Assembly (NCBI RefSeq): GCF_006345805.1
Contig: NW_021832135.1
Location: 1-62,846 of the forward strand
Length of the DNA stretch: 62,846 nucleotides
Reading direction: 5' to 3'
Source of the DNA: Octopus sinensis
Taxonomy: Eukaryota
Shown piece by piece: positions 11,734 to 45,237 of this stretch (positions are counted from its first letter, which is position 1; each line of letters begins with the position of its first letter). Both the position numbers and the translations under genes were made by a program. The notes beneath the pieces were generated by a model. That model worked only from the letters and a program-made list of their open reading frames with translations, was not told where the DNA came from and ran no database searches.

Positions 11734-12534
11734 TTAATAATGGCCATGTCCACCAAGACCAGCGTAACCATATCCACCGAAACCATGTCCATCAAAACCA
11801 GGTCCACCAAAACCGTGTCCTGCAAGAGCGTGTCCATCATAGCCAGCTCCACCATAACCGTATCCACCATAACCTAAACCGCCATAGCCGTATCCACCGT
11901 GTCCAGCAAGACCACCGTGACCAACAACACCACCGTGACCAACAAGTCCACCGTGACCAACAACACCACCATGACCAACAACACCACCGTGACCAACAAC
12001 ACCACCGTGACCAACAAGGCCACCGTGACCAACAAGGCCACCTGCTAGAGCACCACGACCAGCGAAACCGTACCCGCCAAAACCTCCGTAACCTGCATGT
12101 CCATCATAACCGGGACCAGCATATGCGCCATGTCCACCTTCAGCACCGTACGCAGCAGCGTGCCCAGCTACAGCACTGTGTTCACCGCCGTATGCGTTGT
12201 GGCCAGCATGAGCAACAAAGTTTCCATATTTTTCCAACATGTCGTCCTTGTGTTTGTCGTGGTCCTCGTCGTGTTCATGGTGTCCATAGTTGTCCACGTG
12301 ATCGTGTTCATGGTTGCGGAAACCGACGTCGTAGGCGGCTTTCACGCCATGTTCACCGTGTTCAGCGTAGGCGTTGTTTGCTACGTGTTCAGCAGAAGCT
12401 ACACCATGGTGGGCTTCATCGTGGCCTTCTTTTCCATAGTGTTCACCATAGTGTTCACCGTGGGGTAAAACTGAACTGTTTACCAAAAGGAAGACGGAGG
12501 CGAAAACAGCCAGGGCAAGAATGGACATGTTCAT
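11734..12534 (-). CDS. Secreted His/Gly-rich structural protein, paralog A (266 aa; histidine-rich beak protein-like)
   Basis: Intact ORF. Hydrophobic signal peptide MNMSILALAVFASVFLLVNS, acidic His/Glu/Asp head, 8 x G(L/V)(V/A)GHG hexapeptides, GYGG tail ending GHY. ATG context GCCATCATG; splice acceptor ttttcag at 12563-12565 upstream. Two paralogs in the window. Confidence 0.93.
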   Translation of the reverse strand: MNMSILALAVFASVFLLVNSSVLPHGEHYGEHYGKEGHDEAHHGVASAEHVANNAYAEHGEHGVKAAYDVGFRNHEHDHVDNYGHHEHDEDHDKHKDDMLEKYGNFVAHAGHNAYGGEHSAVAGHAAAYGAEGGHGAYAGPGYDGHAGYGGFGGYGFAGRGALAGGLVGHGGLVGHGGVVGHGGVVGHGGVVGHGGLVGHGGVVGHGGLAGHGGYGYGGLGYGGYGYGGAGYDGHALAGHGFGGPGFDGHGFGGYGYAGLGGHGHY

Positions 12535-13229
12535 GATGGCAGTTTATAGAGGACGTGGAGATCTGAAAATAAGGGAAAAGAATGATTAATTATGGTGTTT
12601 AAAAGATATTTAGAGATACAACTATATGTATAAGTGTGTGTGTGTGTGTGGTGTGTGAGAGAGAGAGAAGAGAGAGAGAGAGAGAGAGAGAGAAGAGAGA
12701 GAGAGAGATAGCGTATGTGTATAAACGAACTAACATTTGTTTTTTATAAGTGTTGAAATATGTATTGTAAGATAAAAATGAGATGATAATTTGTTTTCAA
12801 ACGCAGAAACGCCGTTAGAACAACAGAAACATTGGGTAAATTACCCTTAGAAAACGGGAAAATTTGTCAACAACCAGCCATATTATTACTAGATTTATCC
12901 TACATTATATCGGTACACTTCGGTGCAACCCAAAAAACTGGTTCAGCACTCAGTATCATTAGAGTGTAGCCGGCATAATGAAGTAGGGGCTTTATTTGTA
13001 TATTCAAAACGCTTCCCGTAAATAAATAATAGTAAACCTTTCTACGAAAGGCACAAGGACTGACTTTTTGGGAGAGGGGTTAAGTCGATTACATCGACCC
13101 CAGTACTCAAATGCTACTTAATTTATCGACCCCGAAAGGATGAAAGGCAAAGTCGACCTCTGTGGCATTTAATAGTGATAATAATAATAATAATAATAAT
13201 AATAATAATAATATAATAATAATAATAAT

Positions 13230-13568
13230 GTGTTGATAATTCTGTGGGAGTTTGAATAATTGAGATTCTTTGGGTGTTTGAATAATTCCCTCTGGAAACA
13301 TGGGTGGTTCTTTCAACATCCTTAAACAACCCTTATTCAGGGACCTTTTGAGCGGGATGGGCTACTCAACCTGAAGAAATTTCTAACTGGGCCCCACCTG
13401 CAAGGTCATGCGCTGTTTATCTTGATATGAGATCACCATGTCGCGCACATATGGTTGTGATGCATGCGCCTGGTGTACCCTTATCAGACGAGTAGTCATG
13501 GTGGGTATACTGGGCTTCGTATATTTTACCCCAGTGTCACTTTGATGGCATGAACTGCTCTCTCACTC
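13230..13568 (+). mobile_element. Unclassified ~330-bp repeat with (AAT)n tail; second copy at 54355-54672 (-)
   Basis: Two highly similar copies, both embedded in TAA repeats; probably a LINE 3'UTR or a SINE. Confidence 0.7.
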
Positions 13569-13622
13569 AATAATAATAATAATAATAATAATATAATAAT
13601 AATAATAATAATAATAATATAA

Positions 13623-13862
13623 GACCATGAGATTGAGAATAGGAAGCCGGACATAGTCTTAATTGAGAAAGAAAGCAGACTATGTTGAATCATAGATTTT
13701 AGCCATGTCCAGTTGACAACAAGGCATGCGATAAGGAAGAAAGGAAAGTCGAGAGATATGACAGGTTAGCTTGGGAAGTTAAGCAGTTGTGGTCGATGAA
13801 AAAGGTAGCAGTAGTACCAATAATTGTAGGAGCCCTGGAACAGTGAGCAAAAATCTCGAGAG
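13623..13862 (+). mobile_element. Degraded R4/Dong-type endonuclease fragment
   Basis: DHEIENRKPDIVLIEK...YDRLAWEVKQLWSMKKVAVVPIIVGAL; follows (TAA)n. Confidence 0.75.
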
Positions 13863-13898
13863 GTACGTGTGTCTGTGAGTGTGTGTAGTATGCATACA

Positions 13899-14421
13899 TC
13901 TATGTGTTTGTGCTGTCTATATTTACTACGTACTTCTTGTCGAGAGTCAGAGTGTGTGTAAATTTCTTTTCGACCCTTTTAGAATTGGAATTTTTGAAAA
14001 GTAAAAATATTGCATTATGTAGCTTGTTATTCTCTTTAAGTGAACATTTTTCTGGTTGAAATACACCGAAAAATGGCGACACAGCAGTCAAAAAATCGTA
14101 AAAAATAGGGATTTTCATAGAAAAAACGCACCTTTTTGATGTATGATAGAAGGCTTGCTCTTCCTTCCGTAGAAGAAAAACTTCAAATCGGACCATGTTA
14201 ACACCAAAAATTATTTTCATCAAAAAGGTGCTTTTTTTCTATGAAAATCCCTATTTTTTACGATTTTTTGACTGCTGTGTCGCCATTTTTCGGTGTATTT
14301 CAACCAGAAAATGTTCACGTAAAAAGAATATCAAGCTACATAATGCAAAGTTTTTACTTTTCAAAAATTCGAATTCTAAAGGGTCGAAACAAACCCGAAC
14401 AACGCCGGGCAATACTGCTAG
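13899..14421 (+). mobile_element. Helitron-ended element containing a long internal fold-back
   Basis: ~175-bp inverted arms at 13968-14140 and 14217-14389. 3' end CCCGAACAACGCCGGG..CTAG|T is of the same type as 29804. The 5' boundary is uncertain. Confidence 0.55.
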
Positions 14422-43280: not shown

Positions 43281-43291
43281 TAGATGTAATA

Positions 43292-43724
43292 TTTTTTGTA
43301 TTTCTTTACTACCCACAAGTGGCTAAACACAGAGGGGACAAACAAGGACAGACAAACGGATTAAGTCGATTACATCGACCCTAGTGCGAAACTGGTACTT
43401 AATTTATCGACCCCGAAAGTATGAAAAGCAAAGTCGACCTCGGTGGAATTTGAACTCAGAACATAGCGGCAGACGAAATACCGCGTGCTAACGTTTCTTT
43501 ACTACCCATAAGGGGCTAAACATAGAGGGAACAAACAAGGACAAAGAAACGGATTAAGTCGATTATACCGCCCCCAGTGCGCAACTGGTACTTAATTTAT
43601 CGATCCCGAAAGGATGAAAGCAAAGTCGACCTCGGCGGAATTTGAACTCAGAACGTAACGGCAGACGAAATACGGCTACGTATTTCGCCCGGCGTGCTAA
43701 CGCTTCTGCCAGCTTGCCGCCTTT
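43292..43724 (-). mobile_element. SINE B dimer with 16-bp TSD
   Basis: TSD CCGAATAGATGTAATA at 43276-43291 and 43725-43740. Confidence 0.9.
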
Positions 43725-44438
43725 CCGAATAGATGTAATAGTCGGGACAGGAATTCTATATAGTGGTTAACCTGGGGTTAAAAAGCAACACAAGCCAAGT
43801 TACCGAGACTTATTCTACAGAGGGTCCGTGACAAGGGTCGGTAGTGTGGAATGAAAGATGTGAATGAATCTAAAGACGTAGAGCGATGGAAATAAATGTG
43901 AAGAATTTAGTTCTTAGTTCGAAGGTATGTCTTCCTAACCAAGGGGCCATCCAGTGGATCTTTTCGGTTTGACCGGCAATTTAAAAAAATAATTTCCACG
44001 TAACTAAACACTTTTAAACTTCTTATATTGGTAGAATGTGTTTATAAAACATCTTTTTCTCTCTTGAGAAAATGCTATAGTTTGTAAGATATTTGTTGTT
44101 TTCTTTTCTTCAATTTCTGCAATTTCAACCAATCAATGACGTCTATTGAGGTGAAAACATTCTGTGCTGTATGAATATGTCCCTCGTTTAAGAAACAGAT
44201 TGGGTTTATTTACATTTCTGAAGCAAAAAAAAAACCCTAACTAACCCTAACCCTAAAACAGATTGAAATGCAATATATCGATACTAAGGTCATAATTATG
44301 GGTGACAATTTCATATGATACCGCTAGAAAAAACTGCCGTTCAAAGCGAAAAGATTCCATCCAGCCAATATGAAATAAATGTAATAATAAAAAAGCAAAA
44401 CAGATATTTAATACGTACAATTTGGGTGAAAACACCCG

Positions 44439-44444
44439 TTTATT
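44439..44444 (-). terminator. Candidate polyadenylation signal, paralog C
   Basis: AATAAA ~107 nt after the stop; a second AATAAA lies at 44530-44535. Confidence 0.4.
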
Positions 44445-44550
44445 CAACAACAGGTAAGTAAATCAATACGGTTCAGGTTGGCGTTGAGGTTCATCTTTTG
44501 GGGATTTAAGTGTGATAAAAATAAAAGAATTTATTTTTACAAAGTTATTT

Positions 44551-45237
44551 TTAATGACCGTATCCGCCATAGCCACCATAACCACCATGTCCACCATAAC
44601 CGTGTCCAGCCAAACCATGTCCACCAAAGCCGTGTCCACCGAAACCACCGTGACCACCAACACCACCAAAACCACCGTGACCACCAAAACCACCGTGACC
44701 ACCAAGACCACCATGGCCAGCAAAACCTCCATGGCCAAAACCGCCGTGGCCACCAAGACCTCCGAAACCGTGACCACCAAAACCACCGTGACCGAGTCCA
44801 ACTCCATCAAAACCGGGACCGGAAAATCCGCCATGTCCACCTGCAGCGCCGTACACATCAGCGTGCCCAGCTACAGCACTGTGTTCACCACCGTATGCGT
44901 TGTGGCCAGCATGAGCAACAAAGTTTCCATATTTTTCCAACATGTCGTCCTTGTGTTTGTCGTGGTCCTCGTCGTGTTCATGGTGTCCATAGTTGTCCAC
45001 GTGATCGTGTTCATGGTTGCGGTAACCGACGTCGTAGGCGGCTTTCACGCCATGTTCACCGTGTTCAGCGTAGGCGTTGTTTGCTACGTGTTCAGCAGAA
45101 GCTACACCATGGTGGGCTTCATCGTGGCCTGCTTTTCCATAGTGTTCACCATAGTGTTCACCGTGGGGTATTACTGAACTGTTTACCAAAAGGAAGACGG
45201 AGGCGAAAACAGCCAGGGCAAGAATGGACATGTTCAT
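44551..45237 (-). CDS. Secreted His/Gly-rich structural protein, paralog C (228 aa; GHGGFG-type tail)
   Basis: Intact ORF. First ~125 aa almost identical to A/B; the tail is replaced by Phe-rich GHGGFG/GHGF repeats. Acceptor at 45266-45268. Confidence 0.93.
   Translation of the reverse strand: MNMSILALAVFASVFLLVNSSVIPHGEHYGEHYGKAGHDEAHHGVASAEHVANNAYAEHGEHGVKAAYDVGYRNHEHDHVDNYGHHEHDEDHDKHKDDMLEKYGNFVAHAGHNAYGGEHSAVAGHADVYGAAGGHGGFSGPGFDGVGLGHGGFGGHGFGGLGGHGGFGHGGFAGHGGLGGHGGFGGHGGFGGVGGHGGFGGHGFGGHGLAGHGYGGHGGYGGYGGYGH

Follow-up and report, generated by a model that had tools for sequence, protein, structure and literature searches.

Secreted His/Gly-rich proteins of Octopus sinensis as probable homologues of squid histidine-rich beak proteins

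The histidine-rich beak proteins (HBPs) of squid are the model for the hardening of a wholly organic tool by protein coacervates that soak into chitin, and HBP-derived peptides are in wide use as engineered, pH-responsive coacervates for drug delivery. To our knowledge all cephalopods have beaks, and the octopus counterpart of the HBPs is therefore in question. Here we ask whether such a counterpart is encoded on contig C8606, an unplaced scaffold of the Octopus sinensis assembly that was analysed over its whole length of 62,846 nucleotides (the window). The contig carries three genes for secreted proteins rich in glycine and histidine. An original prediction, made from the letters of the DNA, took them for octopod counterparts of the HBPs of jumbo squid, Dosidicus gigas (DgHBPs), or for a related family whose repeat grammar differs. 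Our analysis indicates that they are probably octopod HBP homologues with a new repeat grammar.

Resemblance to a squid beak protein

Three intact open reading frames (ORFs) lie in -/+/- orientation with centre-to-centre spacings of 15.7 and 17.1 kb, as the prediction had it: gene 1 (coding sequence [CDS] at 11734..12534 on the - strand; P0001, 266 amino acids [aa]), gene 2 (27422..28204, +; P0002, 260 aa), and gene 3 (44551..45237, -; P0003, 228 aa). The modules of the three proteins follow one order. A signal peptide (12475-12534, 27422-27481, and 45178-45237 in genes 1, 2, and 3, respectively) leads into a near-identical 115-aa acidic head rich in His, Ala, and Gly (12130-12474, 27482-27826, and 44833-45177) and then into a Gly/His repeat tail (11737-12129, 27827-28201, and 44554-44832, the last a Phe-type tail of GHGGFG variants) that ends at the stop codon (11734-11736, 28202-28204, and 44551-44553). 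On inspection, the N terminus reads MNMSILALAVFASVFLLVNS, with S as the first residue after cleavage; its hydrophobic core is 14 residues long, and the cleavage site is of the form V-x-S (-3/-1). Across residues 1 to 135 just 6 positions vary from protein to protein, and the tails are set apart by insertions and deletions of repeat units; gene 2 is 98% identical to gene 1 and shorter by one hexapeptide unit.

The features that had been read from the proteins by eye held up well. The acidic head motif HHEHDEDHDKHKDD occupies residues 85 to 98, and the composition is 29 to 32% Gly, 13 to 15% His, 10 to 12% Ala, and 6 to 8% Tyr, with 2 to 3 Pro per protein and zero Cys, Trp, Thr, or Gln. A chitin-binding domain, or any other, is absent, Pfam giving no family for the three proteins even at an E of ≤10. 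The hexapeptide grammar was likewise borne out: genes 1 and 2 carry 8 and 7 tandem units with an 18-nucleotide (nt) period, and gene 3 is of the GHGGFG type. The array of gene 1 (8 x GG[LV][VA]GH; 11899..12042, -, coordinates by regular expression) was found by Tandem Repeats Finder as 7.9 copies with 91% match, that of gene 2 consists of 7 units of G[GS][LV][VA]GH (27914..28039, +), and the looser array of gene 3 has periodicities of 18, 27, and 30 nt by Tandem Repeats Finder. GHG itself is retained, with 10 to 13 occurrences per protein, alongside 1 to 3 isolated GHGxY, no GAGFA, and 1 GFA.

For comparison, a bait of six copies of the published DgHBP-2 repeat peptide, GHGVYGHGVYGHGPYGHGPYGHGLY(W), was used to retrieve DgHBP-2 itself, the 193-aa 'Histidine rich beak protein 2' of D. 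gigas (UniRef A0A0G2UHG9). BLASTp of P0001 and P0003 against this protein gave one collinear alignment running through signal peptide, head, and tail, with 32 to 33% identity over 196 to 208 aa and a pairwise E of 2e-8; the octopus signal peptide, MNMSILALAVFASVFLLVNS before S, aligns with that of DgHBP-2. With hhalign, the octopus alignment matched DgHBP-2 at a probability of 92.9% and an E of 3.7e-7. Because signal peptides and GHG repeats might inflate full-length scores, the mature heads were compared alone. Their Smith-Waterman score was 116, which 0 of 5000 global composition-preserving shuffles reached (mean, 58 to 62; standard deviation [SD], 9; z of about 6). The similarity forms a single 91-residue ungapped diagonal, octopus 38-128 against squid 31-121, along which the anchors YA, YG-x-HEHDE-x-H, and Y keep their spacing. 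The motif YG-x-HEHDE-x-H is present in both, as DNYGHHEHDEDHDKHKDDMLEKY in octopus and NGYGLHEHDEQHHGLADGLHQEY in squid.

A resemblance of this kind might also be compositional convergence, in which case the genes would form a family of young orphans, perhaps expressed weakly or not at all, without a role in hard tissue. The weakness of the head similarity once composition is corrected for is in keeping with convergence, as is the finding that 1.84 billion representative proteins yielded repeat look-alikes alone. However, shuffles within windows of 10 or 15 residues, which keep local composition, averaged only 68 to 70 (SD, 10.5; z of about 4.5) and reached the observed head score in ≤1 of 5000 trials; over all types of shuffle, z ranged from 4.4 to 6.3. 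Nor is the similarity scattered in patches: it falls on a single long collinear diagonal along which the anchors keep their spacing.

Several observations weigh against placing the octopus proteins with the squid HBPs. The full-length score comes partly from generic similarity of signal peptides and GHG repeats, and the comparison is with one squid HBP, DgHBP-2. Homology to the DgHBP-2 head is found outside the repeats, with the caveat that under BLAST composition correction the head alone scores 22 bits (E of 7e-4). In tblastn, the DgHBP-2 head gave a nonsignificant result on the window. The head of P0001 contains an internal quasi-repeat, YGKEGHDEAHHG at residues 33-44 (12403-12438, -) and YGHHEHDEDHDK at residues 83-94 (12253-12288, -). 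Both copies match the single squid motif YGLHEHDEQHHG, which may point to an ancient duplication within the head or to a metal-binding unit used more than once. The tandem C-terminal GHGXaXb pentapeptides that mark HBPs (GHGPY/GHGLY, with or without GAGFA/GFA) are not present in the octopus proteins, and a back-translated pattern for the squid-type array GHGxYGHGxYGH had 0 matches genome-wide against 1 for a control. In genes 1 and 2 the central block is devoid of Tyr and Phe, so that the His-Tyr/aromatic mechanism of liquid-liquid phase separation described for HBpep cannot simply be carried over.

Searches without a bait add to these points. Two word-indexed searches of 5.8 billion proteins, with the full length and with the head only, gave zero matches; phmmer against the 1.84 billion representatives gave 6 weak matches, all to the hexapeptide block; and no homologue from any other species appeared in the databases searched, which may lack close relatives. 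Exact-sequence look-ups of contigs or transcripts encoding P0001, P0003, and DgHBP-2 found none on record. A score of 38.5 bits is nonsignificant against a database of billions and lies far below significance on that scale, which explains the failure of the blind searches. The genes also sit on an unplaced scaffold. Finally, Albertin et al. (2022) report suckerins and HBPs from Doryteuthis pealeii, E. scolopes, and A. dux only; they did not identify them in O. bimaculoides and tie both families to decapodiform innovations (PMC9068888); the same shortfall in score plausibly explains this published failure to find octopus HBPs.

Nevertheless, the direct comparison with DgHBP-2, through BLASTp, hhalign, the head shuffles, and the 91-aa diagonal, supports the reading of these proteins as octopod DgHBP counterparts or as a related family whose repeat grammar differs. 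The evidence for homology is significant for one a-priori comparison but modest, and on it we consider true homology to a squid HBP likely.

Copy number, gene anatomy, and selection

When the whole 2.72-Gb genome (2,719,151,902 bases in 13,516 contigs; the published O. sinensis assembly, GCA_006345805.1, comprises 2,719.2 Mb in 13,516 scaffolds [PMC10700109]) was searched with the full protein or the head alone at an E of ≤10, only these three loci were found. Full-length DgHBP-2 matched only low-complexity minisatellites, such as a GEGCRG array on contig C13, and its head, an insensitive query, triggered no seeds in the genome, even at the three octopus genes. A genome-wide pattern for GHGGxx arrays had coding matches only in the three genes, the others being (GGT)n or minisatellites without secreted ORFs. 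Long, near-perfect 18-bp minisatellites occur at C9056:35381-36132 and C14:1415643-1415782 (CATGGCGGTGATGGTGGT more than 40 times and CATGGTGGTGGTGGTGGC about 8 times); they would translate as HGGDGG or HGGGGG hexapeptides, and no secreted ORF was found at the C14 minisatellite.

Lying within 33.5 kb, the three paralogues form a tandem/inverted cluster, and a tandem gene cluster is also a mark of the HBP family; the squid HBPs form a 10-gene cluster on D. pealeii chromosome 12 and show expression in buccal mass (PMC9068888). Nucleotide similarity among the octopus paralogues is limited to about 950 bp around each CDS, over which gene 1 and gene 2 are 95% identical and both are 90% identical to gene 3, and the flanks are unrelated. 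Three copies that are 90 to 95% identical over this length against unrelated flanks indicate that the ORFs are not due to chance. An origin as retrogenes was rejected because the homology continues into the intron past the splice acceptor, making the copies DNA-level duplicates, and an origin as haplotigs or assembly duplicates was likewise dismissed, given that one contig holds all the copies and that their flanks and tails differ.

The gene family is young, and its head is under purifying selection. The synonymous divergence (dS) of the head is 0.04 to 0.06, and the ratio of nonsynonymous to synonymous divergence (dN/dS) is 0.06 to 0.52 between copies. Across the tree, the head has undergone 6 nonsynonymous and 6 synonymous changes against an expected ratio of about 9.5:2.5 (binomial P = 0.02).

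All three genes share the sequence ttttcccttattttcag followed by ATCTCCACGTCCTC(T/A)ATAAACTGCCATC-ATG, in which a polypyrimidine tract and a CAG splice acceptor precede a 28-nt leader to the ATG. These elements lie at 12535..12582 (-) in gene 1 (leader, 12535-12562; polypyrimidine tract and acceptor, 12563-12582), at 27374..27421 (+) in gene 2 (acceptor, 27374-27393; leader, 27394-27421), and at 45238..45285 (-) in gene 3 (leader, 45238-45265; acceptor, 45266-45285). An A stands at -3 of each ATG, and an in-frame TAA lies within each leader 15 nt before the ATG, from which it follows that the complete CDS is in one exon. The original prediction of single-exon genes is thus right for the CDS; the conserved CAG acceptor, for its part, makes an upstream noncoding exon likely, and on the shared sequence each gene very probably has one. 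Exon 1 was not located by comparing the upstream regions of the paralogues, where every common block is transposon derived. The best candidate for exon 1 or a promoter, 16872-17100, was rejected because it is a dispersed palindrome for which the genome has more than 1,100 candidate copies. A TATAAA that precedes the ATG by 18 nt was also discarded as a promoter, being too near the ATG and not conserved in gene 3. Downstream, the polyadenylation signal ATTAAATAAA lies at 11649..11658 (-) in gene 1, 76 to 85 nt past the stop, where the paralogue homology ends, and at 28283..28292 (+) in gene 2, its AATAAA again 76 to 85 nt past the stop. The 3' end of gene 3 is not homologous to those of genes 1 and 2; a candidate AATAAA is found at 44439..44444 (-), 107 nt past the stop, and another at 44530-44535.

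Antisense or off-frame ORFs of 114 to 207 aa overlap each gene (12123-12536, +; 27420-27833, -; 44554-45177, +; and 44895-45239, +). As separate genes they were rejected, being a by-product of stop-poor, GGT/CAC-rich coding sequence. Low-complexity tails can keep frames open without selection, as these antisense frames do, and convergence in an orphan family would also fit a set of no more than three closely similar copies on an unplaced scaffold full of transposons. Against convergence, however, stand the head dN/dS of less than 1 and the splice acceptor, start context, and polyadenylation signals conserved in all three copies, and we regard it as distinctly unlikely.

Besides the three paralogues, no further protein-coding gene, tRNA, or Rfam family was found in the window, and the remainder of the scaffold is transposon debris: elements resembling short interspersed elements (SINEs), long interspersed elements (LINEs), palindromic repeats, and microsatellites. 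An open 253-aa fragment of a LINE reverse transcriptase (Pfam RVT_1) lies at 24858-25619 (+). Genome-wide, more than 35,000 first-look candidate copies of this LINE were found; the 150 that were scored were about 90% identical and lay on chromosome-sized contigs. That many of these 150 have long open frames at such identity points to a recently active family. Because this LINE abounds on chromosome-sized contigs, the scaffold belongs to this genome, and contamination was rejected as its origin.

The SINE-like element, built of internal tandem subrepeats of about 184 bp, occurs about 10 times in the window, with copies at 3018-3621, 23878-24290, 35513-35931, 40088-40631, 43297-43724, 45402-45823, and 57623-58204. 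Each of the three genes has one such copy 160 to 640 bp upstream, and in each case the copy faces the same way with respect to its gene; the element may have travelled with the gene duplication or mediated it. At 16872-17106, with a second copy at 51576-51761, is a near-perfect palindrome of about 230 bp, 93% self-complementary, with (TA)n and (CT)n microsatellites on its flanks. It is a dispersed repeat resembling miniature inverted-repeat transposable elements; its first-look candidates number more than 1,100, most chromosomes bear copies at 93 to 97% identity, and further foldback blocks that resemble it are found at 16496-16641 and 13968-14389. At 31398-32554, a unit of 568 bp occurs about twice as a direct repeat (31398-31988 versus 31966-32554) with 99.7% identity, which makes it either a tandem duplication of very recent date or a stutter of the assembly. 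Near the scaffold end, at 60001-62000, the GC content falls to 23% in a microsatellite block of (TA)n/(TATATG)n type, which may be the reason that the scaffold was not extended or placed. A 103-aa ORF at 41388-41699 (-) terminates in ...HPPYSPDIAPSDFHLF..., which we take to be like the C terminus of a mariner/Tc1 transposase; it had no Pfam match at an E of ≤1.

Charge behaviour and proposed function

A 2025 review characterizes HBPs by a Gly+Ala+His content above 50%, an isoelectric point (pI) of about 6 to 6.5, and hydrophobic character. Gly, Ala, and His make up 59 to 61% of the mature octopus proteins, which have a pI of 6.4 to 6.6, against 6.7 for DgHBP-2. Their computed net charge changes from about +20 at pH 5 to about -16 to -18 at pH 8.1. 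The head has a pI of 6.1 (5.9 in DgHBP-2) and a charge of -16 at pH 8.1 (-12 in DgHBP-2). The tail carries +12 at pH 5, about 0 at pH 7 to 8, and -1 to -2 at pH 8.1; that of DgHBP-2 carries +12.7 at pH 5 and +0.6 at pH 8.1. The tails of DgHBPs coacervate at pH 7 to 9 in 0.1 to 0.5 M salt, according to the review and a methods paper. Since the octopus tail, like that of DgHBP-2, is positively charged at pH 5 and close to neutral at the pH of seawater, the pH switch behind DgHBP coacervation would be conserved in kind, with different 'sticker' residues. The octopus tails are twice as rich in Gly (48 to 59% versus 33%) and far poorer in Tyr (4 to 10% versus 16%) and Pro, with Val/Leu or Phe in place of Tyr and Pro.

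Structure prediction gave little order. AlphaFold2 without an alignment produced a predicted local distance difference test (pLDDT) score of 43.5, with coil at about 30 in the tail and weak helices in the head, which is consistent with disorder, though weak as evidence. A sequence search of the PDB found only hexapeptide-repeat and collagen look-alikes at an E of ≥0.09, none significant. A left-handed beta-helix for the hexapeptides was dropped as unsupported, given these insignificant matches and the tail modeled as coil. The sequence HEHDH (residues 75-79 of P0001) matches the HExxH pattern, a fit probably due to composition alone.

The explanation that we favor, with confidence only a little better than even, is that all three genes belong to the cephalopod HBP family as its octopod members, in a small tandem/inverted cluster like that of squid, encoding secreted diblock proteins. 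Each protein would be secreted and largely disordered, with an acidic N-terminal block rich in His, Asp, Glu, and Ala and a C-terminal block of Gly/His/hydrophobic repeats. In acidic secretory vesicles, about 35 protonated histidines would give a net charge of about +20 and keep the protein soluble. Upon release at pH 7 to 8, the tail would be discharged and could self-associate or coacervate through contacts of hydrophobic Val/Leu (in G[LV]VGHG, which is like elastin), of Phe (in GHGGFG), and of Tyr (in GYGG). The condensate might then infiltrate and dehydrate a chitin scaffold, most likely that of the beak, supplied from the beccublast epithelium of the buccal mass, with final fixation by catechol-His/Tyr cross-links. 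The head, still anionic at about -16 at pH 8.1, would serve solubility before release and may bind divalent metals. For the octopus proteins, we infer the site of expression, phase separation, cross-linking, and metal binding; the beak-forming epithelium is the most likely site of production by homology alone.

The genes might instead encode a structural protein of some other secreted octopus material, such as the sucker lining, radula, oesophageal cuticle, stylet, egg chorion, or stalk cement, as redeployed HBP relatives or as convergent His/Gly-rich proteins. No feature that we found ties them specifically to the beak, the repeat grammar is unlike that of squid beak HBPs, and the family appears young and lineage restricted. 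Moreover, secreted proteins rich in His, Gly, and Tyr recur in hardened and adhesive biomaterials, among them the Nereis jaw protein Nvjp-1 and arthropod cuticle. [quoted passage not shown]

A role in host defense or metal binding would have the anionic pro-region mask a His-rich tail that is active at low pH or with Zn2+, as in antifungals of the shepherin, armadillidin, and tenecin-3 type. A signal peptide, an anionic head, and a GHGG/GYGG tail do recall Gly/His-rich antimicrobial peptides such as shepherin I and the armadillidins, and the dense HxH, HH, Asp, and Glu of the head would be compatible with metal binding. There is, however, no dibasic processing site between head and tail (a lone Arg161 is not conserved in gene 3), and the tail, with 0 to 1 Lys/Arg, is uncharged at the pH of haemolymph or seawater. 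A literature search found no Gly/His-rich antimicrobial peptide described in cephalopods, and the specific similarity of the head is to a beak protein and not to an antimicrobial peptide. We consider this role highly improbable.

If homology to the squid HBPs is granted, a scenario that we put forward tentatively, at slightly less than even confidence, is that the HBP family predates the split of octopods and decapods, rather than having arisen as a decapodiform innovation, and that octopus kept the ancestral acidic His-rich head and rebuilt the phase-separating tail, with an elastin-like grammar poor in aromatics (G[LV]VGHG) in two paralogues and a Phe-based one (GHGGFG) in the third. The origin of the HBPs would then move back to the coleoid ancestor. 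A rebuilt tail would explain why similarity searches missed HBPs in octopus genomes, and the case would show that searches on a database scale overlook fast-evolving low-complexity genes. The octopus tails would amount to an experiment of nature with other 'sticker' chemistries for coacervation that is switched by pH, providing two new natural repeat grammars, one of them nearly aromatic free, with which to ask which residues drive His-switched phase separation. The 2025 review notes that beak proteins have been explored in Dosidicus alone, and our full-text literature search found no primary report of octopus HBP-like proteins.

Comparison with known systems

Gly/His-rich antimicrobial peptides such as shepherin I/II, the armadillidins, and tenecin-3 share secretion and GGH/GHGG/GYGG repeats with the octopus proteins, and their assembly is modulated by Zn. 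They differ in being much shorter when mature, usually processed out of a precursor, and without a homologous head; the octopus proteins have no processing site that would release a short cationic Gly/His peptide. Nvjp-1 of Nereis virens is likewise secreted and Gly/His rich with Asp, Glu, and Tyr, has motifs of the GYGHG/GYGGH type, and assembles with Zn2+ and when the pH is shifted from 5 to that of seawater. However, it has about twice the His (27 mol%), has neither Val/Leu/Phe hexapeptide arrays nor a separate acidic head, and belongs to another phylum, and database searches showed no sequence relationship to it.

The suckerins of squid and cuttlefish sucker ring teeth are, like the octopus proteins, cephalopod specific, secreted, rich in Gly, Tyr, His, and Ala, and encoded by clustered genes. 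Suckerins alternate M1 (Ala/His/Thr) and M2 (Gly/Tyr) blocks, whereas the octopus proteins have no such alternation and show a single head-tail split, with no Thr and only the few Pro residues counted above; octopuses have no sucker ring teeth. Chitin-binding cuticle and beak proteins (Chitin_bind_4/CBM14-type, DgCBP-like) are recognized by a domain, and for the octopus proteins Pfam gave none. One of the phmmer matches, P0005, is an arthropod cuticle protein fragment of the Rebers and Riddiford (R&R) type, in which the end of a Chitin_bind_4 domain is followed by tandem G[LV]IGH[GSP] hexapeptides nearly identical to those of octopus, in a chitinous, quinone-tanned cuticle. The similarity is confined to the repeat, and P0005 has the Chitin_bind_4 domain that the octopus proteins lack, so convergence is the most likely source of it. 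Read with that caution, P0005 shows that the hexapeptide grammar is used in sclerotized chitin cuticle.

The closest likeness is to the squid HBPs. Both are secreted products of clustered paralogues, with a signal peptide, a nonrepetitive acidic His/Ala head, and a GHG-based repeat tail. They differ in the tail, where octopus has G[LV]VGHG or GHGGFG hexapeptides with GYGG blocks and no GAGFA and squid has GHGxY pentapeptides, and in the size of the mature protein (20.6 to 24.4 kDa versus 15 to 18 kDa). The prediction of a longer His/acid-rich head stands only in part: the octopus head is slightly longer than that of DgHBP-2 (115 versus 105 aa) and somewhat more acidic. It also carries Lys, and the octopus proteins, in a further difference from the squid HBPs, are without Thr or Gln. 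What the scaffold offers, then, is not a new kind of system but a diverged variant of a known family in a lineage reported to lack HBPs.

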